64,000 bases of DNA from Mobula hypostoma (lineage: Eukaryota): positions 124,186,001 through 124,250,000 of the forward strand of contig NC_086098.1 of the NCBI RefSeq assembly GCF_963921235.1. Reading direction: 5' to 3'. Position numbers and translations under genes: made by a program. The notes under the pieces were generated by a model. The model had not been told where the DNA came from. It was given only the letters and a program-made list of their open reading frames with translations, and ran no database searches. Positions 28,050 through 64,000 of this stretch are shown piece after piece (position 1 is the stretch's first letter; every line of letters begins with the position of its first letter).

Positions 28050-28310
28050 ACCGCGCGGGAAATAAAGCTTTTCCCGCGCAATGTCACCCGTGTCACGTGA
28101 CGCGTTATTCCGCGACGTCATGTGAACGACGTCAGCGGTGCGCGTCAATGTCCGATCAGACCCTGCACAGTTCCACGCCAGTTGCCGTGTGTACACATGC
28201 GCATTCGATTTCCCAGCCGCCGCCTTGCGCTGTCGGCTCTCGAACGTCACTGTGCAGGTGCACCGTCATCGCGCGGGTGCGCCTGCGCTTGCGCGTCGAT
28301 CAGGCCTGTC
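28050..28310 (+). promoter_or_regulatory. SDE2 CpG-island promoter with E2F, E-box, CRE-like and NRF1-like sites
   Basis: GCGCGGGAAA (28053-62) / TTTCCCGCGC (28070-79); GTCACGTGAC (28092-101); GACGTCA (28114-20, 28128-34); TGCGCCTGCGC (28278-88). Confidence 0.8.
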
Positions 28311-28409
28311 ATGGAGGTGTGGGTACGCGGCTGGGGGACCGGCCTGGTGGCTCTAACGCTGCCGCCTGGCTCTTCCAGCCTGGAGCTGAAGCTGCGCTTC
28401 CACCAACAA
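28311..28409 (+). CDS. SDE2: SDE2 exon 1 (UBL N-terminus MEVWVRGWGTGLVALTLPPGSSSLELKLRFHQQ)
   Basis: ATG at 28311 in the CpG island, donor GTGAGT at 28410, 99 nt phase 0, joins exon 2 in frame. Confidence 0.88.
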
Positions 28410-32236: not shown

Positions 32237-32354
32237 GGCTTCCCTGCTGCCGATATTTACCTAAAATGTAATGGAAAGCTGGTTGCTGAAGATGCAGACC
32301 TTCATGATGGGGCGGTTTACAGTGTGGAACCGAGACTGGTCGGAGGAAAAGGAG
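32237..32354 (+). CDS. SDE2: SDE2 exon 2 (UBL end with GG|KGG cleavage site)
   Basis: TAG acceptor, GT donor; 118 nt; GFPAADIYLKCNGKLVAEDADLHDGAVYSVEPRLVGGKG. Confidence 0.94.
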
Positions 32355-34614: not shown

Positions 34615-34726
34615 GTTTCGGGTCAATGCTTCGTGCACTGGGAGCACAGATCGAGAAAACTACAAATCGAGAGGCATGCCGAGATTTGAGTGGAAGGAGG
34701 CTGCGGGATGTAAACCATGAAAAAGC
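34615..34726 (+). CDS. SDE2: SDE2 exon 3 (SDE2 domain)
   Basis: CAG acceptor, GTAAGG donor; 112 nt; [38 protein letters not shown], the SDE2 signature. Confidence 0.97.
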
Positions 34727-36377: not shown

Positions 36378-36547
36378 AATGGCTGAATGGATAAAGAAGC
36401 AGGCAGAGCGGGAGACAGAGAAAGAGCAGAGGCGTCTGGAACGATTGCAACGCAGGCTCGCCGAGCCCAAGCACTACTTCACTGACCCACAGTACGAGCA
36501 GCAGCTGGACGAGATGTCAGAGCGACTAGAGGACTCTGTGCTTAAAG
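36378..36547 (+). CDS. SDE2: SDE2 exon 4 (coiled coil)
   Basis: 170 nt; [56 protein letters not shown]. Confidence 0.96.
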
Positions 36548-37132: not shown

Positions 37133-37241
37133 GTTTGCAAGCATCATCAAGTGATGTGGTGGCAGTGGAGAGTGGAAGTCAAAAACGTGCATATCCAGGC
37201 GCACACAAGGTGGCCACAGAAGGAAAGAAAAAATGTCTCTG
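37133..37241 (+). CDS. SDE2: SDE2 exon 5
   Basis: 109 nt, phases 1/2 match neighbours; GLQASSSDVVAVESGSQKRAYPGAHKVATEGKKKCLW; acceptor is tttctcttGAG. Confidence 0.88.
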
Positions 37242-38736: not shown

Positions 38737-38999
38737 AAGGATAACTTGTTTTGCCAATGTGGTCAACTAGCCTGAATATTCAAAATGATTCTGATTATGG
38801 CCAAAGTAGTCAAAGCTTCCAAAGGTACATTTAATGTCAGAGAACCATATATAATATACATTCTGAAATGCTCTTTCTTGGTCCCAAGACATTTCATAAG
38901 GGAAAATAAATTATGAACTTTAATCTGGTGAGAAACTTAAAAATAGATTGGAAAAAGCCTCTAAGCTGTGCAAGAATGGGAAGGTTAGAGAAAGTCTTG

Positions 39000-42212: not shown

Positions 42213-42579
42213 GATGGGAGTGGAGGATTTGGAAGAATCTGGGAGTTCTGATGAGGAGTATGTGGCAGAGTGTAGCTCCTCCAAGTCTTTGTCTTGCCCT
42301 GAGAGTTCTGTGGGGCAGGTGAGTGTTGAAAGCAGTGGTGTTGATGGTGTGAGAGACTGTGCTCCTGCACCCAGTATTGAAGCTTGTGTGCCTGAGCCAA
42401 TCTGCAAACCTCAGAGTGAACCCGGACAAGTGGATCCAGGACCCAGTAACGAAGTGGAAGCAGAGAGTTTGGTCTCGCAAGAAAATGAACAACCTGAAAC
42501 GGAAGAGGGCACTGAAAATAGTCCTAAAGAAATGGAGAAGCCGGCAGATAAAGGAAACGATGTGAATCTACCAGCAACA
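42213..42579 (+). CDS. SDE2: SDE2 exon 6 (acidic low-complexity region)
   Basis: ttccttgcAG acceptor, GTAAGT donor at 42580; 367 nt; (W)MGVEDLEESGSSDEEY..NLPAT. Exons 1-6 total 975 nt (325 codons) with no stop. Confidence 0.88.
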
Positions 42580-43519
42580 GTAAGTACTGATTACATAGAT
42601 CCATTTGAGTACAGAACTCAGGCCCTTTACCTCATTAGTCCATGCCAACCAAGATGCCCATTGAGCCAAACCCATTTGCCCGTATCCCTCTAAACCTTTC
42701 CTATCTATGTTCCTATGTCAATCATTTCCTCTGACAACCCATTCCACATACTGACCATGACCACCCTTTGAGTGAAAAGATTGCCCATCGGGTTCCAATG
42801 AAATCTCTCCCCCTCATCTTGAATCCATAGCTTCTAGTTCCCCAATCCTGGGAACCATTTATGCCAATCACAGTCTCCCCACATTCCCGTCAACTCTCCC
42901 CATCCCAGATTTCTACTGCTCACCTAGACAGAGAGCACCTGACGTCAGGATTGAACTCTGGCAACTGGAGTTGTGATGCATCTGCTCCACCGGCTGTGTC
43001 ACAGAGGCACCTTCAAGATATTGCACGTTTCCTCAACTCATATATCAATAAAGTGATTGTCAACCCCAGAGGAACATTAGAACCTTTGTCCTCTTCAGCA
43101 AGTTCCACTTTCAACAAGGTCCTTATTAATCACCCACCTCTTACATGATTTTCTTGCCCTATTTCTGTGTTGCCTGGTTCCTCAAGTATCTTGTAGTCTC
43201 TGCTTTGAATGAACCTGCTGTCAACTCTCCGGAACAGAAAATATGAATGGTTCATTTCCTCTGGGTGAAGAAAATTCTTAATTTAGTGTTAAATGGATTA
43301 CTCCTGACTCTTAAGATTGTGTATGACAAACAATTAGAAGTAGCACTAGGCTACTGGGCCCTTCAAACCTGTACTGTCATTAGTATGATCATGGCTGATC
43401 TAACTTAGCCCTCAGATGTCCCTAATCTTTCAAAAATTTAGCTACCTCTACTTTAAATACATTTAACAATGTAGTTTCCCAAGTCACAGCACATTGGATC
43501 AGAAAATTCCTTCTCTTAG

Positions 43520-44170
43520 AAGAATTGGGAAGGCAAATCAAGACAGTAGGTCTCTGGGACCTAGGAGTACAAGTATATGGTGACACAAAAGTGGCATTGC
43601 AGCTAGAAAGGGTGGTGAAGAAGGCTTTTAGCATGTTGCCCTTCATCAGTCAAGGCATTCACTATAGAAGTTGGAATGTTATGTTGCAGTTACTACAAGA
43701 CGTTGATGAGGCTGTACCTGGAATATCATGTTCAATTTTGGCCATCCTACTAGAGAAAAGATGCCGTTAAGTTAGAAAGAGTGCAGAAAATATTTATGAA
43801 GATATTGGCAAGGACTCAAAGGATTGAATTATAGGCAACAGTTGACAGGCTGGCACTTTATTTATTGGAGCATTAGAGAATTGGGGGTGGTTTTCATGGA
43901 GGTGTATAAAATCATGAGGGGCCTAGGAAGGGTGATTACATGCAGTTTTATTTTTTTCCCAGCGTTGAAGAATTAAGGACTAGGAGTCATAAGTTTGAAG
44001 TGAGAGGGGAGAGATTAATGGGGTGGTTTGTGTACAGAGTGAGATGTCTGAGGAAGTGATTGAGACAGGTACATTAACAACATTTAGAATGGTCAAGTGT
44101 GGGCAAATAGGCATCTTGGTCAGCATAGACTGGTTGGGCTGAAGGACCTGCTTGCATACTGTAATACTAT
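43520..44170 (+). mobile_element. CR1 LINE 3' fragment
   Basis: DLGVQVYGDTKVALQLERVVKKAFSMLPFISQGIHYRSWNVMLQL peptide; CR1 tail at ~44135-44165. Confidence 0.8.
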
Positions 44171-45951
44171 GAGAAATTTCTAGGTAGATTGGCTTTAAAT
44201 GACTGGCCCTGATCTTGAAACTCGTTTGATTTGAGATTCTTCCACTTGTGGACACTGTCATGCCCCCTTGGGATTTTGTATATTTCATTAAGATTATTTT
44301 CTAAACAGTGATCTCTAGTTTTCAGATATGGAAAACTGCCTTACTATATATTATAGTTTGTGTATTTTCACAATATGACCTCCATCTCTGAAACTCTAAA
44401 GAATAGAGATCTCATCTACTCAGTCCCTCATGACGCGAAAGACCCACCACCCCAGGAATTCGTTTGATAAATCTTTATGTCACTCTCGTGGCAAGTACAA
44501 ATGCAATGAGCTGGTTAAAGCCTAGTCTCCTCTTCTGATGATACCACCTCTGTCCAACCTTGGGAGCCTGTGGTGTATTGTTGCAGGTGAACCAGACGTG
44601 TACACCATTGCAGCAATTCCTTGGCACTCCCACAGAACGTCACTCTAACCTGTTTCCTAGGAATTTGGACTGTGGATAACTGATCTCAGTTAACACATGA
44701 TAATTGTCTGATGCAGGGGTGTGAATGGGATGGGCCAGCTATGATCCTTAAGGTTATGTTATACCATTGTGGGAACCTTCAGGAGAGGGAAAAGCACCAC
44801 TGACCAAGAAACTCTGAATCTGAGGTATCTGTCTATTTTTATTGTGATTTCTGTTTCAGTTACAGCTAGGAGCTCAGACCGAGATAAAACTATCAATTTG
44901 AGGTGGGGCAGGGACCTATATTATCCCGATGGGGTTCAGAAAACACTTTTCAAAGAAGGAAACCTGTTTAGTGATAGTTTATTGACATCTAGCAGGTATA
45001 GTCAGATCCCACCTGAGTCTGGATCTCTGACCCTTACCTGATAGGATCTGACTGATACCTGTTGGGTACCACTAAAACTATAAGCCCTTGGGCTAGGACT
45101 AGATGTGGCCTGATTTGTATTTTGTTTTGAGCAGATCTCCAGCCTTGTGTGTAATGGTTATAAGCCACTTTTTTGGGGATGGAGTTAAATAGCCAAGCTG
45201 GTCGATGTGGTTTGCCCCACATGCTTTGAAGGACAAACCTGGAGCCCTGGTGATGCAGAAGCTGACCTCGCTGTGTCTGGTTAAGTGGTAGTAATGTAGA
45301 AGTTGTGTCTGTTACTGCTCTCCTCCAGCCTAGAACATGAGAACAGCACAGAAACTGGCCCTTCAGCCCACAATCAGTGTCGGACATGATGCCAAATTAA
45401 ACTCAATCTCTTCTGCCTGTTAGTGATCCATATCCCTCTATTCCCTCTATTTTCACGTGCTTGTCCAAAAGCCTCTTATATGCCACTATCGTATCTGCTT
45501 CCACCACTACCTCTGACAGCTCATACCGGGCACCTACCACTTTCTGAAGTTAAAAAAATTATTGCCTCGCCCATCTCCCTCAGACTCTCCCTCTCTCACC
45601 TTGTATGCACGCCCTCTAGTTCATCCCCTCACCCAAAATTCTCCACGCACTGTACTTCCTCATTTTGTCCATCTGTCAACTCTTGTCATTGTCATGTTAA
45701 TACAAGTTCTGCCTATTTGCATTCAGACTGATTCTGTAGCCTCTCTCTCAATTGCTGATTCTATTGTATATGTAAGACTGTAGTCTGGACAATAGCATGA
45801 GAAATACTGCTTAAAATTTTTACCTGGCCCACCTGCCCTTCCATTAACTTTGTAAGGAATTGACTCTAGCCAATAGGTGTCATTGATATTAAATTTAGTT
45901 ACCAAAGAAAATAGAAAGAAAATAGTAAAAATATACATTTTCAAATTCCAC

Positions 45952-45968
45952 TATTTACATAAAGTGCT
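45952..45968 (-). promoter_or_regulatory. miR-430/427/302 (and miR-17 family) seed site abutting a Pumilio element in the LEFTY 3'UTR
   Basis: Minus strand AGCACTTTA+TGTAAATA, 80 nt after the stop codon. Confidence 0.65.
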
Positions 45969-46047
45969 TTCTGAATTGCATTTCTGCTTTCACAGGAGAT
46001 TTAAGGGAAATAGGTGTCATGTGTTGCATAGTCCTTTGAAGTTGCTG

Positions 46048-46369
46048 CTATATGACCGAGACATTGTTGGTGGTACAGCCACACTTCTCGGTTATCATGT
46101 TGGGGAACTCAGCCACTTCGATCTCTGTGTAATTGCCCGTCTTCACCAGGTACATCACGGGCAGCGAGGCGCTCTCCACCGCCACACAGCTCCTCTCTCC
46201 GTAGTCAAAGGGCCGTTGTGGCTGCTTGCAACCCCCAAGGCAGCGGAAGGCCTGGTAGCCAGGGGGCTCAATGATCCAGTACTGGGTCCAGGGCAGGTCC
46301 CGGAAGCTAATGAAGTGCTCCTGCCTGCAGCATGTCCTGCCTTTCTCTGCACCACAGTCGCCAGTGCTC
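46048..46369 (-). CDS. LEFTY: LEFTY exon 4 (TGF-beta cystine-knot domain)
   Basis: CAG acceptor; 322 nt; STGDCGAEKGRTCCRQEHFISFRDLPWTQYWIIEPPGYQAFRCLGGC..EVAEFPNMITEKCGCTTNNVSVI*; no interchain Cys and shortened helix region, typical of Lefty. Confidence 0.97.
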
Positions 46370-47440
46370 CTGGACGTGATAAAACACAAATATTAGTTAC
46401 CAAGTAAAAGCTAAATGGGGTAAATTGTTTCGATACAACAAATTAGTTTGGCTAGATAACATTGCATACTGAATCAAAATCAGCTTTTCATGCTCTTTTC
46501 TGACATGAAAAAATGTCCTTTTAATACCAATACACAAATGTCATAGGATCATGTAAATGTCCTGAGAGAGAGGCTCTCTCACAAATGGCAGGAGGGCAGA
46601 TTAAGCAACTTTTAATTAGATTCCAGTCAGCAGTTAGCTGTCTACTGATGATTTGAAAAGAGTGCAGTCTAAATTTTCTGTAGGGTGTCAGGATGAAGGC
46701 CGAGTTTTTGTTCATGAAACTTGATTGAACTAGTCAGAAAAAAAGGTGTCAAGAATTGTGTACTATTGTGGTTCCATGCAGTTAATTGAAATTGTGACCA
46801 ATACGAATACTCCTGATCTCTTAAACTCAGTTTCACTGTTTGAGGTTCAAAAGATAAATGTTAATCAATTGTGTTATCAGTCAACTGATAGAAGCAAACT
46901 CCACGCATTTTTATAAGAACTGCAAGACTTTTAATTCATCTTCTAGCTGAGATGAGGTAACACTGTACTTCCAAATATAACTTGCAGCCATGTGTTTCAG
47001 TGTGTAGACCCCTGGTTATATGACGGGTTGCATAATTCCTGTCTCAATAATTAACTTTGAAGCAACTTGGCGGAAGTAGAGCTTATTGTGAGTCCGTAGT
47101 AATTGTTTTTGTCTTGCTCTCTACCAGCTGCCAGAAAACAAATTTCAGGACGTATGTCAGTGATAATAAAACTGATTCTACTTTGATTGTGGTAACAAAC
47201 AAGAGTTTCTACAACGTAAATGAATGCGGCAGCTTTGTTAATACTGTGCGTCATATCTATTAGATTTTAATTATTTTGTGGCAATGACTGTATAGCTTAA
47301 CATAGGATGTAAAGTTAGACTATGCCTGTTTAATTTCAATGCAGTAAAGTTAATGATTAATTTTGATTATCAGAATAAGCTGTGTGGGGAGAGGGACAAA
47401 ATTGGTTGTTGCCCCAAAAAGTTCCTTAACAAAGACGTAC

Positions 47441-47677
47441 CCATATTCTTCAAGGTTGAGAGTATAGAGGACTAATTCTGGTTTGCCCAGTACTTGGTCA
47501 GCAGCGCTTTGAGTGGTGAAGTGCACCAGTTTGGCTAATTCAGCTGCGTAGCTGCCCGTTCGCTCTGCCTCAACCCAGATTTCCAGGTGCATGGGTGTGT
47601 CTGCACTCTTCATCCAGTAGTACACGGCCTGTGTGATGTCCAAGCTTTCCCATCCGGAGTTGAGGATAGGAACCAAC
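47441..47677 (-). CDS. LEFTY: LEFTY exon 3
   Basis: 237 nt; LVPILNSGWESLDITQAVYYW..GKPELVLYTLNLEEYG; AG/GT boundaries. Confidence 0.97.
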
Positions 47678-49334
47678 CTGGCAAGGCAGAAAGTTTATTA
47701 GTCGATTAATTTGCCTCTTCCTTTTGCACAGTTAAAGGTATTGTGCTGAACCAATGCTAATTGGAATGGTTGCTAGGAACGATGTTTGATGTACATTGTT
47801 ATAAAGTTGAGTTGTACAGCACAGAAACAGTCCCTTTGACCATGTCTTTCCAAGTCCCTTCTGGAGTCTGCTCCATTTGCCTTAAGAACCTGAGAAACAA
47901 AGGATCATTCGAATGTCTGATTTACTGTTGCTTCCCCCCCTCCCCCCCAACTGTAATAGTCAATTATTTCTCTCAATTTTTCATGGAAAATTGCCAAGGA
48001 TGTTGCAAATGGGTAATTAAACTTAAGCAATAGGATAAGAAGCTGAGTGGTTCGCTCGTTCAAAATCTGAAACCACCATTCAGTTTAAGCGCTGTCTTTT
48101 CACTGCAGGCTTGCACATTTTTTCCTTCTGCATGTCCAAGAGCTGTTATTTTAGCTGGTCCCACTATTCATTTGGGATTGGATTCCATGTCATAAGTTTG
48201 CCAAATGAATAAGGTTCTCCCATTTTCTCACATTTTCTTCAAAGGATGTCTTTTTCGAGTTTATAAATGTTTCACGGCAATGGCATTTTAAAATAATGTC
48301 CCCCGAACTTGCTGTGTGCAAACTGTGTTTAAGTGCCATCAAGATTCAGTTTTAATACTGATTTCATTTAAAAGCCATGGTAATTGATTGTGGGTGCCAC
48401 TGTAAGTATCCTTTACTGATTCCATTGTGGACAGAGGCGAATAAACCATTTGCTGCTGTTTGCAACCCTAATCTATTAGAACTTGAGGGCTGCTATGCCC
48501 TGCAGCTCAAATAGATCTTTGCTTGTAAGGCAGCTGTGAAGAATATACATAGTGTGGAGCTGCTGTTTCAAAAGCAGATTGGAAATTTAATTTTAAAAAT
48601 TAGTTTCTACATGAAATTTTACTTTTGAATATTTTGTTCTAGTGTATTAACATTTATACATTTCCAGGCATGCATGTGCAGATGGGTACAATTGACAGGA
48701 TGTTATTATGTGCATCCCACGACATGCAACAGAAGTAAGGAAGTGGGTGATGGTGGGTTGGAGAGAACAGCAGAAATTAGAGAGAAACATCTGGACTCCA
48801 CAACACCAGATTGTTGGTTTGCTGTGGTGTGTAGCCTCCCCTGTGAGGAGAGTACATGTGGTGAGGCCTGTGTGGTTTGGAACTGAAACAAGAAGTGATC
48901 TCATTGAAATGTATAAAATGTTGTGATGAGATCTCATCTGGGAGACCAGGAATAACCATCACAGTGATAAACTGCTCTTTGGAAGAGGGACTAAAGCTGA
49001 AAAATACACTTAGCACTTGGAAGTTTAATCTAAAGTAAATTAAGTAGTCTAGTGGTGTTACAGTAGGTTGTGGTTGTCTAGAGTGACTACAGGTGCTGGA
49101 AGCTGAAGCAACACAAAAAGTGCTGGAAGAACTCAGCAGGTCAAGTAACGTCTATGCATGGAAGTAGGCAATCAACATTTCAGTTCCAGATGCTCCCAGA
49201 AAGTTATCTTTTCGGGTCATCTCTACCCTAAATGTCAACTGTCCATTTCCCTCCATTAATGCTGCCTGACCCACTGAGTTCCTCCAGCTCTTGTATTGGA
49301 GTTAAAATCCCACCCTGAGTTATTTTAGAATTTA

Positions 49335-49740
49335 ACATAAGAAGATAAGAAATAAGAGCAGGAGTAAGCCATCCGGCCCATCGAGCCTGCCCCGCCATTC
49401 AATAAGATCATGGCTGATCTGTCCGTAAACTCAGCTCCACCTACTTGCTCCATAACCCTTACTTCCCTTTTTATGTAAAAACCTATCTAACTGTATCTTA
49501 AATATGTTTAGTGAAGAAGCCTCAACTGCTTCCCTGGGCAGAGAATTCCACAGATTTACCACTATTTGGGAAAAACAGTTTCTCCTCATCTCCGTCCTAA
49601 ATCTTCTCCCCTGAATCTTGAGGCAATGTCCCCTAGTTCTAGTCTCACCTACCAATGGAAACAACTTTCAAAATTTTTGTATGTTTCTATAAGATCCCCT
49701 CTCATTCTTCTGAATTCCAGAGCGTATAGTCCCATTTTTT
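49335..49740 (-). mobile_element. Well-preserved CR1 LINE 3' end in LEFTY intron 2
   Basis: ORF 49431-49664(-) FPLVGETRTRGHCLKIQGRRFRTEMRRNCFSQIVVNLWNSLP; short tandem tail (cataaga-like) at 49336-49356. Confidence 0.88.
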
Positions 49741-50080
49741 TAAAATCTAGTTTTATTTGGAATGGAAATCTCTTGTCACCATGATTGCCCACAGAAGTTG
49801 AAGATTGTTGTAAAAACACTATCAATTAGAATCTGAGTTGTGTAGAGTGGGAACAAAGTCTTCAGCCCGCTGTGTCCATGCCTACCCCTACTAATCACAT
49901 TTGTGTTAATCCCATGACGTTTTGACCTGCTTATTCAAGTGCCCATCTAGGTACCTACTGAATGTTGTTACTGTCCTTACTTCCACCGCCACCTCTGGCA
50001 GCTTACTTCGCTCTTTTATCTAGTGTCCACCAGAGAGAAAACTCAAGGAGTTTGTCCTACACTGATGTGTTTCCTTCCTA

Positions 50081-53040
50081 CGCACACAAAATGCTGACGG
50101 AACTCAGCAAGTCAGTCAGTGTCTATGGATAGGGAATAAACAGTTGCTGTTTTATCTTGGAAAGGAAGGGGCCAGAAGCCAGAATAAGGTAGGAGGGTGG
50201 GGGAAGCAATTCAAGCCGACAGGTGATAGGTGAGATCAGGTAAGGGGGAAGGAGGGTGGGTGGGGGAGGGGTGAAGTAAGAAGATGGAAGATAAGTAGAA
50301 GAGGTAAAGGCTGAAGGAAGGAGGAATCTGATAGGAGAGGAGAGTGGACTATGGAAGAAAGAGGAGGAGGATGGAAACCAGAGTGGGATTGGGCAGGTGA
50401 GAAGAGAAGGGGTGAGAGGGTAACCAGAATGAGGACTGGTAAAGGAGAGGGGTGAAACTGCTGGAAGTTGGAGAAATCAATGTTCATGCCATCAGAACAT
50501 GAATGGAATGTGAAGTGCTGCTCTCCAACCCGTTTAGCCTCATCATGCCAGTCCAGGAGGCTCTGGATAGACATTTCAGAATGGGAAGTCAAACTCAAAT
50601 GTGTTGCCAATGGAAGATGGTGGAAGTTACAGAGAATGATGTGCCGGATATGGATGCTTGTGGGGTGGTAGGTAAGGACAAGGGAAATCCTATCCCTGTT
50701 ATGATGGCGGGGAAATAGGTGAGGGTAAATGTGCAGGAAATGCAGGCAAGGGCAGCATCACTGATAGTGGAAGGGAAACGCCATCCTTTGGGAGGAGAAA
50801 AGGACATCTCAGATGTTCTGGAATGGAAGGCCTCCTCCTGAGAAAAGACACGATAGAGACAGAGGAACTGAGAAAGGAAATAGCATTTTTACAAGTAACA
50901 GGGCGGGAAGGGGTATAGTCAAGATAACTGAGTAAATAGGTTTGTAAAAGATGTCAATAGATAATCTGTCGCCAGAGATTGCAGAAAGGGAGAGAAGTGT
51001 CAGAGATGGGCAGGTAAATTTGAGGGCAGGGTGGAAGTTGGGGGCAAAGTTGATGAAATTGATGAGCTCAGCATGGACACAGGAAGCAGCACTAATGCAG
51101 TCATCAGTGTAACAGAAAAAGTTGGAGAGCATGGACTGTTCCACACGATGAAAAAGTGGGCACAGCAGGGGCCAATGCGTTTGGAGAAAGTGGGAGGAGT
51201 TGAAAGAGTTGAGGGTAAGAACCAGGTTAGCCAGGTGAATGGGGTGATGGTGGAGGGGAACTGGTTAGGTTCTCTTGTTGAGACAGAAGCAGAGTGCTTT
51301 GAGGCCTTTCTGATGGGGACTATATTTCTAAAGTGAAAATGAGGTGATCCAGGCTGGAGAACTGAAGTGATGAAGTGACATGGATATAGGTAGGAAGGGA
51401 CTGAGCAAAGAGGGTTAAAAGGGAGCTGAGGTATGCAGACACAAGCTCAGTGGGGCGGGAACAGGCTGAAACAATAGGCTTACTGGGCAGTCAGGTTTGT
51501 GGATCTTGGGTAGGAGGCAAAAGTAAGCAGTCTGAAAGTAAGGGAATTGTGAGCTTGGCAGTTGATGGGAGATCTTCAGAGTTGATGAGGTGGAGACGGT
51601 GTGGGAGACAATGGCCTGATGCTCCTTTGTCGGGTCCAGTGCAGGGAGTAAGTAAGAGGAGATATCTGAGAGCTGCTGTCCGACCTCAGCAAGGTAGAGG
51701 TCACTCTCCAGACGAAAACAACCACCCCCCCTTCCTGTCAGCAAGCTTGAGTGAAGTTGGTATGGCGAGAGTGGAAGGCAGGTGTGTTCAGAGAGGGTTA
51801 AGTTAGCTTTTTTCTTCATTCTTCTCCCCCCCCCACCCACTTCTCCATCCACCCACCTTCCCCTCACTTTATCACCGATCACCTGCCTGTACTCCTGTAC
51901 TCCTTCCCCTCCCTGCAGATGCCGGACGAGAGCAGCATACAAAGTAAATAGTCGACATTTGGGGCTGAGAGCCTTCGTCAGGGCTGGAAAGGAAGGGGGA
52001 AGAAGCTGGAATATGGAGGTGAGGGGTGGAGAATGAATATAAGCTGGAAGATGATAGGTGAAACCAGGTGGGTGGGGGAGACAGCATGAAGTAAGAAGCT
52101 GGGAGGTGGAAAAGGTAAAGCTCTGGAAAAGAAAGAATTTGATAGGAGAGGAGTGTGGCCATTGGAAAAAGGGAAGTGAAGGAGCACCAGGGGAAAATGA
52201 TAGGCAGGTGAGGAGAAGTAAGAGGGGGCCAGAGTTGGAACTTGAAGAAGAGGGAAGGGGGAGGGGGCAAATTATCAGAAGTTGGAGAGATTGATGTTCA
52301 TGCCATCAGCTTGGAGGCTACCCAGACAGAATATAAGGTGTTGCTCCTCAAACGTGATAGTGGCCTCATTGTGGCAATAGGGGAGGCCTTGGACTGACAT
52401 GTTGGAATGGGAATAGGGATAGGAATTAAAATGGTTGGCCACTGTGAAATCCAGCTCTTTGTAATTGGAGCGAAGGTGTTTGACAAAGCAGTTCCCCGTT
52501 GTACCTTAGGTCCCACCAGTGTAGAGGAGGCTGCATTGGGAGCATTGGATACAGTAGATAACCCCAAAAGATTCACAGGTGAAGTGTTGCCTCACCTGAA
52601 AGGATCGCTTGGGGCCCTGAATGGAGGTGAATGAGCAGGTGTAGCTCTTGTGCTCGCAGTTAGGTGCCAGGAGGGAGTTTAGTGGGTAGGGATGAATAGA
52701 CAAGGAAACCAGGAAGGGAGTGATCTTTCCATAGAGTGGGGAGTGAGGGGGAGGTAGATATGTGTTTGGTGGTCAGGTCCCATTGAAGATGGTGGAAGTT
52801 GCAGGGAATGATGTGCTGGATGTGGAGGCTCACAGGGTGGACGGTGAGGACAAGAAGAACTCTATTCCCATTAAGGTGGGGTGAGGATGGAGGTTCAGGA
52901 AAAGCAGGGGATGCAGGTGAGGGCAGCGTAAATGGTGGGGAAAGGAAAACCCCATTCTTTGAAGGAGGAGGACATCTCTGATGTCCTGGAAAGGAAAGCC
53001 CCATCCTGGGAATAAATGTGGCGGAGTCGAAGGAACTGAG
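50081..53040 (-). mobile_element. Two tandem decayed Penelope-like copies (~50081-51800 with RT remnants; ~51910-53040) separated by a short inverted piece
   Basis: RT remnants LLPKIHKPDCP and CYTDDC..NFHPALKFT; GIY-YIG remnant FTCESFGVIYCIQCSQCSLLY; hammerhead motif 51949-51986 (GAAA>CAAA). Confidence 0.85.
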
Positions 53041-53396
53041 GCTGGGCGTGAAGATAATCATAGGAGTCAGTGTGTTTATACCAGATATCAGTAAAACAAT
53101 ATGTTTTACCATAACCTTATTATGATAATTGTAGCTTTGCACTTTTGTCTATCTGCACTGCATCTAGAAATGCTAGCTTTGCGAATGAAGCTCACTGCCT
53201 TGAGAACAAATGTGTATTTATCAGTTTAAAGAATATGATGATTATTTATTGAATATTTAATTGTTATTGATTAACAATCGGGGAGGAAAAAGCTAATAAC
53301 CCCGTGGGGGAAAGATCAGCTTTAACATTTCTTAAATTGTCTTAACTCAGCTGGGCAAATCCCTGGAACGTATTCCAACATTAGTCTTGCCCTTAC

Positions 53397-53640
53397 CTAG
53401 AGTCGATGAGTGAGGTGCTGTTGGTGCCATCGGCCAGGATCTTGACCCAGTACACACTGACCCTGGCGTTGTTGACAGGCCGGCTGTGTTTCCTGGGAGG
53501 GAGCTCCCCCTTGTGGACGCCCCTCTTGAAGAGCTTGAGCTCTGCCATGGTCACCTCGCTGTTGTCAGGGATCAACCCCTTCATGTCGAAAACCAGCCTC
53601 TGCCTGGTGGGGTCTGAGTACAGCACTTCTCCGGTTGTGC
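53397..53640 (-). CDS. LEFTY: LEFTY exon 2
   Basis: 244 nt; GTTGEVLYSDPTRQRLVFDMKGLIPDNSEVTMAELKLFK..RPVNNARVSVYWV..SLIDSR; donor GTAAGG. Confidence 0.97.
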
Positions 53641-54534
53641 CTGGGGACACAGAACTGGTTACTTGGAAGGTTTTAAACTCCCATATCCATCTTGAGTACA
53701 TTGGTTACTTGTATCGGAGAAAAAAATACTAAATTGTCTGTACTTCACACAGTGTGAACCTACGGCCTTTGTCATCAGTGGTGTTGTGAATTCCCCCAAT
53801 CTTTAAAGAAGCTGGGGTGTTCTTGAGTTGATCAGTTGTCAGCAATAAGTGTACAGGTTACAGAAACTGGAAGTGCACTTTGTTAAGTTCATGCAGAATA
53901 ACTTGGGGATCGTAGTTCAGCTTTGCACTTTGTTTGTCCACCTGCACTGACTGTACCACTGTAATCTGTATTCTCTTTTGCTTGTGTATTACATAGTTTG
54001 CCTGGGTGATGGGTAAACGGTCTATTATTATCACCACACCTACAGAGATACAGTGAAAGGCCATTTTGTGCATCAGAATATAGAGATAGTACGAAGGAAA
54101 AAAGATAGAATATGATAAACCGATATCACCACAATAAACCTCAGTTCACACATGATGATGATTCGGGAACTCTGGCTGCGTGCTTTCCATGTAGGAATTC
54201 CCCAACCCTGGTGTGTAAAATCACGAGGGGCATTTTCACCCTATCAATGCCCGTCCTGATTTTATACACCTACAAGGTGCTCCCCTCAGTCTCCAACACT
54301 CCAGGGGAAAGAAATCCCTGTCTATCCGTATAACTCAAAAGGACATTGAGTCTGTGACAATAGGGAGAAGTGAGCATCTCCCTTCATTACCTGTACTGCA
54401 ACATCCCAGCCCAGTGCAACGCTTGGAGAGATTGAGGCAAGGGGTAGGAGGGAGAGATTACAAGCCAGCACTAGGAAGGTGACATAATTGTATTTCTGGT
54501 TTCAAAGTCAAAAGCAGATCAAAGCCCGGTTTAC

Positions 54535-54829
54535 CTGCATTACCTGTAATTCCTCGCAAAATGCTGGCCAGGCTGGGCAGGGCTCTCCGCCTCCTCTCCT
54601 TCTCCTTGTGCAGCTTCAGCATGGACATGTACTTGTTCCGGAGGTGTGTTGGCACCACCACCCTCTCCAGGTCCCTCTTCTCCATCTGTGGCACTTCACT
54701 TAGGCCTAGCTTACGAAGCATAGCGTTCTTAATGCTGTCGTGGGAGACTCCACTCACTGGGGCTGTCTGCAGCACCAACAGAACAAAGACAGGCAGCATA
54801 GTGGTCAGGCTGTTGTTGATTCTGGTCAT
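54535..54829 (-). CDS. LEFTY: LEFTY exon 1 (signal peptide, prodomain, RRRR furin site); alternative ATG at 54799
   Basis: 295 nt; hydrophobic LPVFVLLVLQ signal; RRRRALPSLASILRGI. Total CDS 295+244+237+322=1098 nt (365 aa). Confidence 0.95.
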
Positions 54830-54973
54830 CTCCTTGAAGCAGCCCCCTGGTGGTTGAGGAGTTTTGCCTCTTGTTGCTGGTAAAATCACTTTTTTCCTTT
54901 ATTTCTGTTTCCTTTCAATCTTCTGTGCTCTTTCTCTCCTCTGTGCTCTCTCTGTATATGATTGCTGTTGATC

Positions 54974-55130
54974 TTTTATAGCAGCAGCTGCCATCCAGAC
55001 TAAGCAGATTATATACAGACTGCAGACATCAAACACTGCTGGCTCAGTCACACCATTCAGTTTGATTGACACCTTCCAGGTTATGTGCAAATTGCAAACT
55101 AACCAGGGGGATGGGCTAATTTGCAAAAAA
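54974..55130 (-). promoter_or_regulatory. LEFTY proximal promoter: TATA box with adjacent SMAD-binding elements
   Basis: TATAAAA on minus at 54980-54974; CAGAC at 54996-55000, 55016-55020, 55023-55027. Confidence 0.7.
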
Positions 55131-58100
55131 TATAACGAATATTTCCAGCGTCCAAACTAGTCTTTGTGCAGTTTATTATAACTACAAATTATGTGCACAT
55201 GTTTCCTTTATTCTGGCCATCTCTCATCTTTGCCCTGACTGCTTATTTGCTTTAAGACTGGTGACCAATGCTCTTTAAGAGGTATAGTGCTGCAGAACAA
55301 CTCTTACAGGGCACACGTAGCTCTCCCAGATGCTTCGAGTGTTACCAAAATGGGTAAAGTACAAGGCAAAGAAAACTGTGGGCACTCGGAACGAATCAGT
55401 TTTCCCCATTTTGATAATGCAGGATTGTGTAGTGGGTATTTGTGCAGGTTTGTGACTTTCCAACAGAGTGTATTATAGTTCTGTTGTGCTGTGAGGGGGA
55501 CAGCTGAGAGTGTTCTTAGTAATGACTCAGCAGAGAGTTTGCTTTAGTCTAATTCAGTTGTAGGTGCCACAGCATAAAATATGGTGTGAGCTGCATCCTG
55601 TGGACAGCCAAGTGAAAGATTTCAAACTGAAGAATTGCAAACACATCCACCTCAGTATCTGTGAAATGAACACTGACAGGAGTTGGTGTAAAATCAAAGC
55701 TGCTCAGGCTGTTCCTTGGAGTTGCTGACACTTTCAATCCATAAAGTTGTAGCTGTCCATGTGTGACCCACAAGCAGTTAAATCAGGGCATTTGACTTGA
55801 CTATTCAGATTTCTCTTCAAGATGCAACAATGTTGTTGCTAGTCATGTTCCCACTTGGTAGAAAGTGGCAGCAGCCAGCACATCCATCCCACCAGTCTCC
55901 CAAACGGTCGTCCGTATGTACTGGATGTCCGTAATTCAGGCATTTGTAACCTGGCGAGGATCTGTACAGATAAACATAAATGTTGCTGCCCATAACTCCC
56001 TTATCTCCTTGCCCTCAACAGCCCGAGGCTGGAGTAGCCTGACAGGCCTCTCATTATTCTGGTGTTTATAGCAGCAGCACCTCTTTCTGGTGCTTTACAG
56101 CAACAGCTCTTCTCAATGGGAATAGCAGTCACAATTGGCATAGCAAGGCTTTATGACAGCAATCTGCATCAAGACCAAGATCAGTACGTAAGTATCTGAC
56201 ATTGATAGGGCCTTGTTATTGTAACAGGCGTTTGTGGAGCATTAAAACGTTCTCATTGATAAAATAATCGGATATCAACTGTTTTGTGCATTGTAAACCT
56301 ATCATTGAAAGTACATTTCCAGGTTAACTGGCTTTGGTGGTTGACTTATTATTCTTACTGAGATATAGTGAAAATCTTATGGTATGCCATCCAGAAAGAT
56401 CTTTGTGTGCATAAGTACATTGAAGTAGAACCGAAGGAAATACAATAGCGTGGAGACAGTGTTATATCACAGAGTGCAGGGCGGTGACATGGTAAAATGA
56501 AAGATCAAGAATGTGTTCTGTCCAAGGGTCTTATAACAGCAGGATAGAAGCTGTCCATGAGCCTGGTGGAAGGTGTTGTGTTCTCAAATTTTGTATCTTC
56601 TGCCTGACTGGGGGGGAGGGGATTTGGTGGCGGGCGTTTAACAGGGGAGAGAGTGACCATGATGGCAGTTCCTCGATTATGTTGGCTGCTTTTCTGATTC
56701 AGCAGGAAATGTTGGCACAGTCTGTGGAAGTAAGGCTGGTGATTGTATAGACTGGACTAGTATATTTGTATTGTCAGGTTCCTGTGGTCTAAAGCAATGG
56801 AGAATCATTTCTTCTGCAGGGCTGGGGAGAAAGGTAAAGGAGCCAGAATGAGGAATTACAGGTTAGTGTGCGTTGAGTCTAGAACCGCGAGGCAGACCAT
56901 TCGGCCCATCTCTGAGTGTATTCTTACTTCAGCTGAAATCCATGTGTTAGTCACCTCTTCTACCCCTTGTGTTAAACGATTTGAATGCTTCAAATGGTTT
57001 CAGTGTGTGTCTGACCCAGGAAAGAGTGGAATATACAGTTACAAACTCATTCCATTCCTCTGCCGAATGTGGTGCTAATGTTGTCAGACTTAATTCTTCA
57101 TTAAAGTAATTAAGTGCAGAGAAATAGATGACTGGCAGCGAGTTAGGAAGTTGCAAATCAATGTACTGAATGAAAATTACTGATTTAGTATTGCTCAAAT
57201 ATACACTGTTACAAGGGCTAATGACATCTAATGACAGTCAGTTTCAAATCAAGTTTTTAAAACTGTGGGTAATAAAGATCTGCTTAATGCTTTGCCAGTG
57301 GCATACTTGAATATATTCAATTAATGTTCACACTGTACAGAGCCACAGACTGGTTGACTGGGACACCAGCCGTTGTCCATTCCCCCGTTGGCCCGTAGAC
57401 TTCATCAAGGAGAAAATCCATCTTTGTGACGCACATTTCTGTATTACTTTGCATCTTTCATTTAAAATCCTTCCCTGACCTTTCCCTTTCATCTTCATGG
57501 ACTCTCTCTATCCTTTTTCCTTGGAGATATCTGCAGTCTAAGTTTAGTTGCTATGTTATTGATGGGACTGCCTTCATACTGCCAAGGGGCAAAGCTTTCA
57601 AACTCAGTTAAACTGTTAATGCTGATTTCTTTAATCAGAGTTTCTGTCCCTGTAAGGCCTAGTGGTGGCCTTTGTTTGATAATGGCTCTATGAACTACTT
57701 CTGGGTGTTCTGCTCTGTGACAGGTTCTACATTAGTGTACATTGTTAATGACCCAAAGTGATCATACAGTCGGTTCTCTTCAAAATTCCTGAAAAGTTTT
57801 GAGTGACTCAATCATCACAATCTGCATTTCCTTTTTTGGGTGGGGGACGGGGGATTAGAGAATGGGCAGTGAAAAATAACCAGATACTTCCTATGAGGTA
57901 TCCATGGACTTGTGTCTCTGCCAGGCGTCTTAGTACGGAGATGAGAGCACAGGAAAAAAAGTTGAGTTTAAAAAATAATGTAGCCTTGGAAGAGGGAGAC
58001 TGGTTAGGAATTGTTCAGCAGCTTTGGGCTTGTCACTGAGTAGCTCATCACAGTGTTAAGTGACAAACTACATACGAATTGATTAATTTTCCTCGGCACC

Positions 58101-58484
58101 AGAGGAAGATACACACAGTGAAATGCTAATGCACAGCTATTACCTCCCAACAGTAGAGACGCTGGTTCTTTGTGTGGAGTTTGCACTGTCTCCCTGTGCT
58201 TACGTGGGATTCCCCTGGCTGAGATATGAGCAGTATCTGTTTCCCCTGGCAGACATATGCACAGTTCCAGAGACTCTAATTTGATCTGTGGAGTTTACAC
58301 CTTCTACCTGTGCTTACGTGGGATTCCCCTGGCTGAGATAGGTGCAATATTTGTTTTTTCCCCGGCTGGGATACGTATGGTATGCTTCCACCCAGTTGAG
58401 CTACCTGAAGATAAAGTCGTACAAAAAGGGGGTAAATCTGCACATGCTGGAAACCTGACATAGAATATAGAGCAATACATCACC

Positions 58485-61400
58485 CATAGTGTACATCACG
58501 GGAGAAGGTCCATCAGTCCAGGGTGTACATCACTGGAGTAGGTCCATCAGTCCATAGTGTACATCACTGGAGTAGGTCCATCAGTCCATGGTGTACATCA
58601 CTGGAGAAGGTCCATCAGTCCATGGTGTTCATCACGGGAGAAGGTCCATCAGTCCATGGAGTACATCACTGGAGAAGGTCCATCAGTCCATGGTGTACAT
58701 CACGGGAGTAGGTCCATCAGTCCATAGTGTACATCACTGGAGTAGGTCCATCAGTCCATGGTGTACATCACTGGAGAAGGTCCATCAGTCCATGGTGTAC
58801 ATCACGGGAGAAGGTCCATCAGTCCATGGTGTACATCACTGGAGTAGGTCCATCAGTCCATAGTGTACATCACGGGAGTAGGTCCATCAGTCAATGGTGT
58901 ACATCACTGGAGAAGGTCCATCAGTCCATGGTGTACATCACTGGAGTAGGTCCATCAGTCCATGGTGTACATCACTGGAGTAGGTCCATCAGTCCATAGT
59001 GTACATCACGGGAGTAGGTCCATCAGTCAATGGTGTACATCACGGGAGTAGGTCCATCAGTCCATGGTGTACATCACTGGAGTAGGTCCATCAGTCCATG
59101 GTGTACATCACTGGAGAAGGTCCATCAGTCCATGGTGTACATCACTGGAGTAGGTCCATCAGTCCATGGTGTACATCACTGGAGAAGGTCCATCAGTCCA
59201 TGGTGTACATCACTGGAGAAGGTCCATCAGTCCATGGTGTACATCACTGGAGTAGGTCCATCAGTCCATGGTGTACATCACGGGAGTAGGTCCATCAGTC
59301 CATGGTGTACATCACGGGAGTAGGTCCATCAGTCCATGGTGTACATCACTGGAGTAGGTCCATCAGTCCATGGTGTACATCACTGGAGAAGGTCCATCAG
59401 TCCATGGTGTACATCACTGGAGTAGGTCCATCAGTCCATGGTGTACATCACTGGAGAAGGTCCATCAGTCCATGGTGTACATCACTGGAGTAGGTCCATC
59501 AGTCCATGGTGTACATCACTGGAGAAGGTCCATCAGTCCATGGTGTACATCACGGGAGAAGGTCCATCAGTCCATGGTGTACATCACTGGAGTAGGTCCA
59601 TCAGTCCATGGTGTACATCACTGGAGAAGGTCCATCAGTCCATGGTGTACATCACTGGAGTAGGTCCATCAGTCCATGGTGTACATCACTGGAGTAGGTC
59701 CATCAGTCCATGGTGTACAACACTGGAGAAGGTCCATCAGTCCATGGTGTACAACACTGGAGTAGGTCCATCAGTCCATGGTGTACATCACTGGAGTAGG
59801 TCCATCAGTCCATGGTGTACAACACTGGAGTAGGTCCATCAGTCCATGGTGTACAACACTGGAGAAGGTCCATCAGTCCACGGTGTACATCACTGGAGAA
59901 GTTCCATCAGTCCATGGTGTACAACACTGGAGTAGGTCCATCAGTCCATGGTGTATATCACTGGAGTAGGTCCATCAGTCCATAGTGTACATCACGGGAG
60001 TAGGTCCATCAGTCAATGGTGTACATCACTGGAGTAGGTCCATCAGTCCATGGTGTACATCACTGGAGTAGGTCCATCAGTCCATGGTGTACATCACTGG
60101 AGAAGGTCCATCAGTCCATGGTGTACATCACTGGAGTAGGTCCATCAGTCCATGGTGTACATCACTGGAGTAGGTCCATCAGTCCATAGTGTACATCACG
60201 GGAGTAGGTCCATCAGTCAATGGTGTACATCACGGGAGTAGGTCCATCAGTCCATGGTGTACATCACAGGAGAAGGTCCATCAGTCCATGGTGTACATCA
60301 CTGGAGTAGGTCCATCAGTCCATGGTGTACATCACTGGAGTAGGTCCATCAGTCCATGGTGTACATCACTGGAGTAGGTCCATCAGTCCATGGTGTACAA
60401 CACTGGAGTAGGTCCATCAGTCCATGGTGTACATCACTGGAGAAGGTCCATCAGTCCATGGTGTATATCACTGGAGTAGGTCCATCAGTCCATAGTGTAC
60501 ATCACGGGAGTAGGTCCATCAGTCAATGGTGTACATCACTGGAGTAGGTCCATCAGTCCATGGTGTACATCACTGGAGTAGGTCCATCAGTCCATGGTGT
60601 ACATCACTGGAGAAGGTCCATCAGTCCATGGTGTACATCACTGGAGTAGGTCCATCAGTCCATGGTGTACATCACTGGAGTAAGTCCATGGTGCATATCA
60701 CGGGAGTATGTCCATCAGTCCATGGTGTACATCACTGGAGTAGGTCCATCAGTCCATGGTGTACATCACGGCTGTAGGTCGATCAGTTCGTGGTGTACAT
60801 CACGGGAGAAGGTCCATCAGTCCATAGTGTACATCACGGCTGTAGGTCCATCAGTTCATGGTGTACATCACTGGAGTAGGTCCATCAGTCCATGGTGTAC
60901 GTCACTGGAGTAGATCCATCAGTCCATGGTGTACATCACTGGAGAAGGTCCATCAGTCCATGGTGTACATCACGGGAGAAGGTCCATCAGTCCATGGTGT
61001 TCATCACGGGAGAAGGTCCATCAGTCCATGGTGTACATCACAGGAGTAGGTCCATCAGTCCATGGTGTACATCACTGGAGTAGGTCTATCAGTCCATGGT
61101 GTACATCACTGGATAAGGTCCAGCAGTCCAAGATGTACATCACTGGAGTAGGTCCAGTAGTCCATGGTGTACATCACTGGAGTAGGTCCATCAGTCCATG
61201 GTGTACATCACTGGAGAAGGTCCATCAGTCCATGGTGTACATCACTGGAGTAGGTCCATCAGTCCATGGTGTACATCACGGGAGAAGGTCCATCAGTCCA
61301 TGGTGTACATCACGGGAGTAGTTCCATCAGTCCATGGTGTACATCACTGGAGTAGGTCCATCAGTCCATGGTGTACATCACTGGAGTAGGTCCATCAGTC

Positions 61401-64000
61401 CATGGTGTACATCACTGGAGAAGGTCCATCAGTCCATGGTGTACATCACTGGAGAAGGTCCATCAGTCCATGATGTACATCACTGGAGTAGGTCCATCAG
61501 TCCATGGTGTACATCACTGGAGTAGGTCTATCAGTCCATGGTGTACATCACTGGAGTAGGTCCATCAGTCCACGGTGTACATCACTGGAGAAGGTCCATC
61601 AGTCCACGGTGTACATCACTGGAGAAGGTCCATCAGTCCACGGTGTACATCACTGGAGAAGGTCCATCAGTCCATGGTGTACATCACGGGAGAAGGTCCA
61701 TCAGTCCATGGTGTTCATCACAGGAGAAGGTCCATCAGTCCATGGTGTACATCACAGGAGTAGGTCCATCAGTCCATGGTGTACATCACTGGAGTAGGTC
61801 CATCAGTCCATGGTGTACATCACTGGAGAAGGTCCAGCAGTCCAAGATGTACATCACTGGAGTAGGTCCATCAGTCCATGGTGTACATCACTGGAGTAGG
61901 TCCATCAGTCCATGGTGTACATCACTGGAGTAGATCCATCAGTCCATGGTGTACATCACTGGAGAAGGTCCATCAGTCCATGGTGTACATTACGGGAGAA
62001 GGTCCATCAGTCCATGGTGTTCATCACGGGAGAAGGTCCAGCAGTCCAAGATGTACATCACTGGAGTAGGTCCATCAGTCCATGGTGTACATCACTGGAG
62101 AAGGTCCAGCAGTCCAAGATGTACATCACTGGAGTAGGTCCATCAGTCCATGGTGTACATCACTGGAGTAGGTCCATCAGTCCATGGTGTACATCACTGG
62201 AGAAGGTCCATCAGTCCATGGTGTACATCACGGGAGAAGGTCCATCAGTCCATGGTGTACATCACTGGAGAAGGTCCATCAGTCCATGGTGTACATCACG
62301 GGAGAAGGTCCATCAGTCCATGGTGTTCATCACGGGAGAAGGTCCATCAGTCCATGGTGTACATCACAGGAGTAGGTCCATCAGTCCATGGTGTACATCA
62401 CTGGAGTAGGTCCATCAGTCCATGGTGTACATCACTGGAGAAGCTCCAGCAGTCCAAGATGTACATCACTGGAGTAGGTCCATCAGTCCATGGTGTACAT
62501 CACTGGAGTAGGTCCATCAGTCCATGGTGTACATCACTGGAGAAGGTCCATCAGTCCATGGTGTACATCACTGGAGAAGGTCCATCAGTCCATGGTGTAC
62601 ATCACGGGAGAAGGTCCATCAGTCCATGGTGTACATCACGGGAGAAGGTCCATCAGTCCATGGTGTACATCACGGGAGTAGGTCCATCAGTCCGTGGTGT
62701 ACATCACTGGAGTAGGTCCATCAGTCCATGGTGTACATCACTGGAGTAAGTCCATGGTGTATATCACGGGAGTAGGTCCATCAGTCCATGGTGTACATCA
62801 CAGGAGAAGGTCCATCAGTCCATAGTGTACATCACGGCTGTAGGTTCATCAGTTCATGGTGTACATCACTGGAGTAGGTCCATCAGTCTATGGTGTACAT
62901 CACTGGAGAAGGTCCATCAATCCATGGTGTATATCACTGGAGAAGGTCCATCAGTCCATAGTGTACATCACGGCTGTAGGTTCATCAGTTCATGGTGTAC
63001 ATCACTGGAGTAGGTCCATCAGTCTATGGTGTACATCACTGGAGAAGGTCCATCAATCCATGGTGTATATCACTGGAGAAGGTCCATCAATCCATGGTGT
63101 ATATGACTGGAGAAGGTCCATCAGTCCATGGTGTACATCACGGGAGTAGGTCCATCAGTCCATGGTGTACATCACTGGAGTAGGTCCATCAGTCCATGGT
63201 GTACATCACTGGAGTAGGTCCATCAGTCCATAGTGTACATCACTAGAGAAGGTCCATCAGTCCATGGTGTACATCACTGGAGAAGGTCCATCAGTCCATG
63301 GTGTACATTACTTGAGAAGGTCCCCATCAGTCCATGGTGTATATCACAGGAGTAGGTCCATCAGTCCATGGTGTATATCACAGGAGAAGGTCCATCAGTC
63401 CATGGTGTACATCACAGGAGTAGGTCCATCAATCCATAGTGTATATCACGGCTGTAGGTCCATTAGTCCATGGTGTATATCACGGGAGAAGGTCCATCAG
63501 TCCATGGTGTACATCACTGGAGTAGGTCCATCAGTCCATGGTGTACATCACAGGAGCAGGTCCATCAGTCCATGGTGTACATCACTGGAGAAGGTCCAGC
63601 AGTCCCTGGTGTACATCACAGGAGAAGGTCCAGCAGTCCATGGTGTACATCACTGGAGTAGGTCCATCAGTCCATGGTGTACATCACAGGAGCAGGTCCA
63701 TCAGTCCATGGTGTACATCACTGGAGAAGGTCCATCAGTCCATGGTGTACATCACGGGAGAAGGTCCATCAGTCCATGGTGTACATCACGGGAGAAGGTC
63801 CATCAGTCCATGGTGTACATCACTGGAGTAGGTCCATCAGTCCATAGTGTACATCACTAGAGAAGGTCCATCAGTCCATGGTGTACATCACTGGAGAAGG
63901 TCCATCAGTCCATGGTGTACATCACAGGAGTAGGTCCATCAATCCATAGTGTATATCACGGCTGTAGGTCCATTAGTCCATGGTGTATATCACGGGAGAA
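58485..64000 (+). repeat. 34-bp tandem satellite CCATGGTGTACATCACTGGAG(T/A)AGGTCCATCAGT, about 160 units, running off the window end
   Basis: Directly visible head-to-tail array with no unique spacers. Confidence 0.98.

Follow-up and report, generated by a model that had tools for sequence, protein, structure and literature searches.

The window analysed here, a stretch of 64,000 nucleotides from the devil ray Mobula hypostoma, contains no N runs or gaps. It holds H3-3A on the minus strand, the first six exons of SDE2 on the plus strand, a complete gene of the TGF-beta family on the minus strand that we putatively call LEFTY, and a 34-bp satellite that runs off the window end. H3-3A lies upstream of SDE2 and is divergent from it, which we take to be the arrangement in mammals as well.

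SDE2 and LEFTY in the window

Exons 1-6 of SDE2 extend on the plus strand from 28197 or 28311 to 42579 and are intact, with GT-AG at every border. The two starting positions correspond to two ATG codons, the one at 28197 being the choice of the M. hypostoma annotation and the one at 28311 opening the conserved MEVWVRG start. The RefSeq SDE2 protein of this species (XP_062925109.1) has 434 amino acids, and its residues 1-363 are 100% identical to the translation of the six exons. Coding exon 1 (28197..28409) encodes residues 1-71 and is followed by a GTGAGT donor, whereas exon 2 (32237..32354, with an AG acceptor, a GTAAAA donor and a tblastn match of 100% to the RefSeq protein) encodes the remainder of the ubiquitin-like domain, up to the GGKGG cleavage motif. 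The N-terminal ubiquitin-like domain with its GG cleavage motif (Pfam PF22781) is thus present in exons 1-2 as MEVWVRG...LVGGKGG, since XP_062925109.1, to which these exons are 100% identical, carries PF22781; the exon 1 fragment searched alone against Pfam gave no match. The SDE2 domain (PF22782) is divided between exon 3 (34615..34726, first half, E = 1.1e-14), which matches the SDE2 proteins of many vertebrates at 100% identity, and exon 4 (36378..36547, second half, E = 7.8e-7), which also has tblastn matches; both exceed the gathering score. Exon 5 (37133..37241) is 100% identical to the RefSeq protein and has its splice sites. Exon 6 (42213..42579) encodes an acidic, weakly conserved linker, 100% identical to residues 242-363, and terminates in ...CCAGCAACA (protein ...DVNLPAT), directly followed by GTAAGT, a phase-0 consensus donor at the same junction position as in relatives.

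The TGF-beta gene reads on the minus strand from an ATG at 54829 to a stop codon ending at 46048. Its open four-exon model of 365 amino acids has canonical splice sites, and the coding blocks, placed from Pfam matches and the open model, lie at approximately 54829-54535, 53640-53397, 47677-47441 and 46369-46048. The TGF-beta propeptide (TGFb_propeptide, PF00688) falls on exons 1-3 and the C-terminal cystine-knot domain (TGF_beta, PF00019) on exon 4. The putative assignment to LEFTY, and by position to LeftyB, is based on the place of the gene beside or inside SDE2 and on the literature (PMC12344233). No second LEFTY copy (LeftyA) was found in the window. The satellite occupies 58484..64000, 3.7 kb upstream of the LEFTY ATG, and comprises about 163 copies (Tandem Repeats Finder, 92% matches, score 9199).

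Position of the SAP-encoding exon

Vertebrate SDE2 proteins end in a SAP-type DNA-binding domain, which we sought in the window by three methods. Regular expressions for the SAP core motif (KCGGT, GGTxxER, ERAxRL) had no match in the six frames of the whole 64 kb. Full-length SDE2 queries from about 45 vertebrate proteins, searched with tblastn with a word size of 2 and an E cut-off of 10, gave no C-terminal match on either strand, and everything reported outside exons 2-6 was noise. A profile HMM was made from the C-termini of 28 SDE2 proteins and searched against the six frames with --max, so that all filters were off; its best E value was 3.7, for an unrelated location. This result rules out that the window, including the minus strand beyond LEFTY, contains a SAP exon in divergent or inverted form. 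The first-pass annotation had described exons 1-6 as intact with a strong phase-0 GTAAGT donor, a LEFTY gene converging on them, and a conserved last SDE2 exon that was undetectable at 42.6-58.5 kb. The splice borders and protein identity, the LEFTY start and stop codons, and the concordant regex, tblastn and HMM results bear out these observations, the last of them for the whole window. The interval at 42.6-46 kb, where it had held that a SAP exon would refute it, is part of the region searched here, and no such exon was found.

The missing tail is present in the annotated protein. Residues 364-434 of XP_062925109.1 form a canonical 71-residue SAP tail (...GLKCGGTLQERAARLF...) with no counterpart in the window, and the SAP exon begins directly after residue 363 with EPRLEDW. 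The C-terminal SAP-type domain (Pfam PF13297, SDE2_2C) is found in this protein and lies outside the window, its exon being placed from the annotation. In the gene table of GCA_963921235.1 the SDE2 coding range measures 60,452 bp and encloses a TGF-beta gene of 365 amino acids on the opposite strand. When the table was mapped to the window with an offset of 18196, anchored on the SDE2 ATG (28197), this nested gene fell on 46048-54829, to the base the stop and ATG of the LEFTY gene described above. Because of this exact match, the SDE2 stop codon can be placed at window-equivalent 88648, so that the annotated coding sequence extends 24.6 kb past the window and LEFTY is wholly enclosed, on the opposite strand, by the last SDE2 intron, which also contains the satellite. 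Exon 7 is predicted at window-equivalent 88433-88648 on the plus strand, a position that combines a computational RefSeq model with the coordinate match of the nested gene. The remainder of the window downstream of exon 6 (42580..64000), which has no SAP-coding sequence, would then be the first 21.4 kb of an intron of about 45.9 kb.

According to this gene model, devil-ray SDE2 keeps its SAP exon about 24.4 kb beyond the window end, and the apparent loss is a window-edge artefact, the exon seeming lost because the window stops inside a last intron of about 46 kb. The window would accordingly consist of H3-3A, the first six SDE2 exons and the initial 21 kb of that intron, with a complete LEFTY gene (LeftyB in the naming of Kuraku) inside it on the opposite strand and the seventh exon, encoding the SAP DNA-binding domain, some 24.4 kb out, beyond the satellite. 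Splicing of the SDE2 pre-mRNA would skip over LEFTY and join exon 6, at the GTAAGT donor (42579/42580), to exon 7, and the product would be a normal SDE2 protein of full length (396 to 434 amino acids). We regard this explanation as a whole, with LEFTY nested antisense in a long last intron and no loss of the domain, as almost certainly correct, and we infer from the annotated model that transcripts in vivo mainly use the exon 6-exon 7 junction.

The first-pass annotation had offered two alternatives, of which the second, antisense nesting with exon 7 past the satellite, is the one upheld by the annotated protein, the coding range and the relatives (skate, stingray and chimaera share the layout). 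Its first alternative was a true loss of the SAP domain in the ray lineage, possibly at the breakpoint of an inversion in which LEFTY was turned around as well, leaving a short unrelated tail or read-through to a TAA at 42693. The 21 kb downstream of exon 6 that lack a SAP exon speak for such a loss, as do SAP-less "isoform X2" models in Pristis, Narcine, Pristiophorus and Mustelus. However, this proposal is contradicted by XP_062925109.1, which has a full SAP tail and whose coding range reaches 24.6 kb beyond the window. The donor of exon 6 is undamaged, every close relative retains a SAP exon on the far side of a nested LEFTY, the convergent orientation dates far back and implies no recent breakpoint, and the X2 species checked (Pristis, Narcine and Mustelus) also have a full-length X1 with the SAP domain. 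Loss is so improbable on these grounds that we consider it effectively refuted. Beyond the correct annotation, namely that devil-ray SDE2 retains its SAP domain, the result has little significance.

Gene order and orientation in other vertebrates

The same layout was identified in other cartilaginous fishes. In the little skate (Leucoraja erinacea), SDE2 exon 6 ends at 20706, LEFTY occupies 29504-41106 on the minus strand and the SAP exon lies at 56700-56924; the nested skate gene is 68-81% identical to the window LEFTY per exon. The elephant fish (Callorhinchus milii) has exon 6 ending at 18973, LEFTY (minus strand) at 22982-27155 and exon 7 at 37302-37517, with H3.3 upstream of SDE2 and divergent from it, as in the window. 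In the gene table of the Atlantic stingray (Hypanus sabinus), SDE2 extends over 48.3 kb and encloses LEFTY on the minus strand, and in that of Carcharodon, the gene table alone being considered, SDE2 spans 35 kb and no nested gene is listed. The nested antisense arrangement is old and common to rays, skates and chimaeras. It is also already known: in every chondrichthyan genome scanned, the last intron of Sde2 has been reported to contain LeftyB in antiparallel orientation (Kuraku 2024, Dev Dyn 254:887, PMC12344233). The genes, the host intron between the last two coding exons and the antiparallel orientation are the same in that study and in Mobula, Leucoraja, Hypanus and Callorhinchus, so the finding is ordinary and Mobula is one more species. 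The two accounts agree in all essentials; PMC12344233 places the host intron between exons three and four, the fourth being the last, and by our count it separates coding exons 6 and 7 in all the species that were aligned.

These comparisons also bear on a possible assembly error, in which LEFTY or the satellite would have been misplaced between SDE2 exons 6 and 7. Long satellites, such as the one that starts here at 58484 and continues to the window end, are prone to cause breaks in assemblies. Yet the order and orientation recur in four independently assembled cartilaginous-fish genomes and are reported for all the chondrichthyans scanned in PMC12344233, and the window itself is without gaps, which leaves only an extremely remote chance of a misassembly.

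Outside the cartilaginous fishes, SDE2 (plus strand) and LEFTY (minus strand) converge tail to tail in the swift Apus apus (GCA_020740795.1). The bird differs from the ray in that LEFTY is not nested; it lies 5.9 kb downstream of the SAP exon, and the last SDE2 intron measures 4.9 kb. SDE2 is compact in Amia, Xenopus laevis and Chelonia, and no LEFTY lies within 10 kb of it, so these species are uninformative on orientation. In human and mouse, LEFTY2 presumably has the same orientation as SDE2 and a position outside it, and PYCR2 separates the two LEFTY genes. The convergent orientation is shared by the bird and the Chondrichthyes and is therefore not a lineage-specific inversion, contrary to what had been suggested for this locus from the sequence of the window; the first-pass annotation had itself named such sharing as the refuting outcome. 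The small comparative gain from the bird is that the cartilaginous-fish orientation needs no special inversion. The mammalian order is Lefty1-Pycr2-Lefty2-Sde2 (PMC12344233), and SDE2 thus adjoins a LEFTY gene both there and in the window.

Alternative transcripts and origin of the nesting

Full-length SDE2 might be made while a sizeable share of transcripts ends in the LEFTY-bearing intron, by intronic polyadenylation or at a cryptic terminal exon, and yields a functional SAP-less protein. In the SAP-less X2 models that NCBI gives for the four elasmobranchs, exon 6 is followed by a short tail; these models are consistent with this, as is the great length of an intron that is also transcribed from the other strand. 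However, the X2 tails of Pristis, Narcine and Pristiophorus are mutually unrelated, which suggests noise and not a conserved product, and only the full-length Mobula model turned up in our searches and in the one cluster inspected. We consider functional SAP-less SDE2 unlikely.

With antisense nesting and a retained exon 7 as the preferred reading, further proposals can be made. Transcription of SDE2 in elasmobranchs may often terminate early because the last intron is so long and is transcribed antisense; if so, the X2 form of sawfish, electric ray, sawshark and smooth-hound would be a regulated product, and transcription of LeftyB would lower the level of full-length SDE2 and raise that of the form without the DNA-binding domain. 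Separately, convergent SDE2 and LEFTY in both a bird and cartilaginous fishes may point to convergence as the ancestral jawed-vertebrate state. The nesting could then have arisen by tandem duplication of a unit comprising the SAP exon and LEFTY, after which the proximal SAP exon was lost. Taken jointly, regulated termination, ancestral convergence and nesting by duplication strike us as distinctly improbable. Such a tandem duplication would also account for the LeftyA/LeftyB pair.

SDE2 exons 1-6 and the search for a SAP exon

The window has no N runs, and six SDE2 coding exons were located on its forward strand: exon 1 (28311-28409, canonical borders), exon 2 (32237-32354), exon 3 (34615-34726), exon 4 (36378-36547), exon 5 (37133-37241), and exon 6 (42213-42579). 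Exons 2-6 have canonical AG/GT borders, and exons 3 and 4 match the SDE2 domain (Pfam PF22782) above the gathering score. The phase-0 GTAAGT donor reported in the first-pass annotation at the end of exon 6 was confirmed in the window (...GCA ACA|GTAAGT). There are two in-frame start codons, at 28197, upstream of exon 1, and at 28311. The former begins the M. hypostoma RefSeq SDE2 model (434 aa), and the latter, the conserved MEVWVRG start (396 aa), is used by the M. birostris SDE2 model and by most other vertebrate models.

Full-length SDE2 proteins were collected by an exhaustive HMMER search seeded with SDE2 exon 3, and nearly all of those recovered end in the conserved SAP tail ...LGLxxLKxELxxxGLKCGGTLQERAARLF.... 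A SAP motif search in all six frames of the window gave no match, and tblastn of the recovered proteins against the window matched SDE2 exons 2-6 only. With a profile HMM of 28 SDE2 tails, the lowest E was 3.7 when all open pieces of at least 12 aa from the two strands of the entire window were searched with every filter disabled. These searches bear out the earlier observation that no SAP exon is detectable in the window.

The TGF-beta family gene LEFTY occupies four exon blocks on the reverse strand, from its ATG at 54829 to the end of its stop codon at 46048, with TGFb_propeptide and TGF_beta matches; the exons join at canonical splice sites into an open model of 365 aa. Since SDE2 lies on the forward strand and LEFTY on the reverse strand, the two genes converge, in the tail-to-tail layout first described.

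Location of exon 7

By exon identity, the closest relatives of the window SDE2 are rays. SDE2 of Hypanus sabinus is 84% identical to it in the fast-evolving exon 6, which ends in ...NQPAT and is directly followed by the SAP exon (EPRLEDW...), and the 90% identity cluster of this protein includes SDE2 of Mobula birostris, Mobula hypostoma, and Hemitrygon akajei. Residues 1-363 of the M. hypostoma SDE2 protein (P0286, XP_062925109.1) are 100% identical to window exons 1-6 read from the ATG at 28197, and its last 71 residues are a canonical SAP tail that matches nothing in the window. The proposed loss of the SAP domain in this lineage is therefore refuted.

In the gene table of GCA_963921235.1, the SDE2 coding range is 60,452 bp and contains an antisense 365-aa TGFb_propeptide/TGF_beta gene, whose limits are +17,851 and +26,632 relative to the SDE2 ATG. 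When the table was anchored by placing this ATG at 28197, the TGF-beta gene fell at window positions 46048-54829, the exact LEFTY stop and ATG, and the window is therefore collinear with the assembly. According to the gene table, the SDE2 stop is predicted at window-equivalent position 88648 and exon 7 at approximately 88433-88648, 24.4 kb past the window end, and the last SDE2 intron is about 45.9 kb long. Thus the other explanation offered initially, LEFTY nested antisense in a long last SDE2 intron with exon 7 beyond the satellite, is the correct one.

SDE2 pre-mRNA transcription would run through LEFTY and the satellite, and the donor at 42579/42580 would be spliced to the distant SAP exon, yielding a normal SDE2 with ubiquitin-like domain, SDE2 domain, acidic linker, and SAP domain. 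The exon structure, the coordinates of the nested gene, and the identity of exons 1-6 to the annotated protein are established here; we infer that the annotated exon 6-exon 7 junction is the main one in vivo. NCBI holds SAP-less SDE2 'isoform X2' models, which stop shortly after exon 6, for Pristis (P0160), Narcine (P0028), Pristiophorus (P0204), and Mustelus (P0268); full-length X1 models with SAP are also present in Pristis, Narcine, and Mustelus. Of the X2 tails, those of Pristis, Narcine, and Pristiophorus were inspected; all three are short, and they are mutually unrelated. The X2 models hint that the long, antisense-transcribed SDE2 intron is leaky for premature termination; such termination might be regulated but is unlikely to be more than noise.

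Gene order in other vertebrates

Antisense LEFTY nested in SDE2 was found in three other cartilaginous fishes, and the layout is not peculiar to the Mobula lineage. In the Leucoraja erinacea locus (L001), SDE2 exon 6 ends at 20706, LEFTY (reverse strand) spans 29504-41106, and SAP exon 7 spans 56700-56924. The corresponding positions in Callorhinchus milii (L002) are 18973, 22982-27155 (reverse strand), and 37302-37517. In Hypanus sabinus, by its gene table, a 48.3-kb SDE2 range contains reverse-strand LEFTY at +19.5 to +28.5 kb, and SAP exon 7 is placed at the end of the range, 19.8 kb beyond the start codon of LEFTY. Across these relatives, 10-20 kb separate the LEFTY ATG from the SAP exon; in the window just 9.1 kb remain beyond the LEFTY ATG, 5.5 kb of them satellite. 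Callorhinchus also shares the upstream neighbour, an H3.3 histone gene divergent from SDE2 (L002 2066-4982). In the window, the coding exons of this gene (H3-3A-like) run from 14968 to 11195 on the reverse strand, with protein fragments including ...QRLVREI... and ...LVGLFEDT..., and are likewise divergent from SDE2 on its upstream side.

The nested arrangement was already known: in every chondrichthyan genome scanned by Kuraku (2024, Dev Dyn 254:887, PMC12344233), LeftyB is described as antiparallel within the last Sde2 intron, and LeftyA as lying about 60 kb from it. The Mobula window is one more instance of it. Section 3.5 of that paper names the 'third and fourth (last)' exons of Sde2 as those flanking LeftyB, whereas in our alignments of Mobula, Leucoraja, and Callorhinchus LEFTY lies between coding exons 6 and 7.

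Among bony vertebrates, the bird Apus apus (L005) has its SDE2 SAP exon at 20096-20308 and LEFTY on the opposite strand at 26253-29288, convergent as in the window but 5.9 kb apart and not nested. Convergence therefore occurs both in cartilaginous fishes and in at least one bony vertebrate, the outcome that the first-pass annotation had specified as refuting an inversion particular to this lineage. No evidence on orientation comes from Amia, Xenopus, and Chelonia, whose compact SDE2 genes lack a LEFTY gene within 10 kb. In human and mouse, SDE2 and LEFTY2 are presumably co-oriented. Given the convergent, non-nested genes of Apus apus, convergence may be the older state and the mammalian orientation derived.

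Repeats in the window

A satellite with a 34-bp unit (CCATGGTGTACATCACTGGAGTAGGTCCATCAGT; some 163 copies, 92% matches) extends from 58484 to the window end at 64000 and continues past it; it is open in several frames and lies inside the SDE2 intron, 3.7 kb upstream of the LEFTY ATG. Between H3.3 and SDE2, about 58 copies (89% matches) of a 37/78-bp satellite, made up of a CA run and GGTTACAGGGGCGTGACGGACGGGC, occupy 18013-20272 and produce the GC peak (0.62) at 18-20 kb. One dispersed repeat family has several copies on both strands (about 15.4-16.1, 29.0-29.8, 38.9-39.6, and 50.2-53.1 kb), with similar open-frame fragments such as ...WKLEKSMFMPS..., ...EAVDRHVRMGMGCGIKM..., and ...LEGLFGALNGG...; some copies fall within the long third LEFTY intron.
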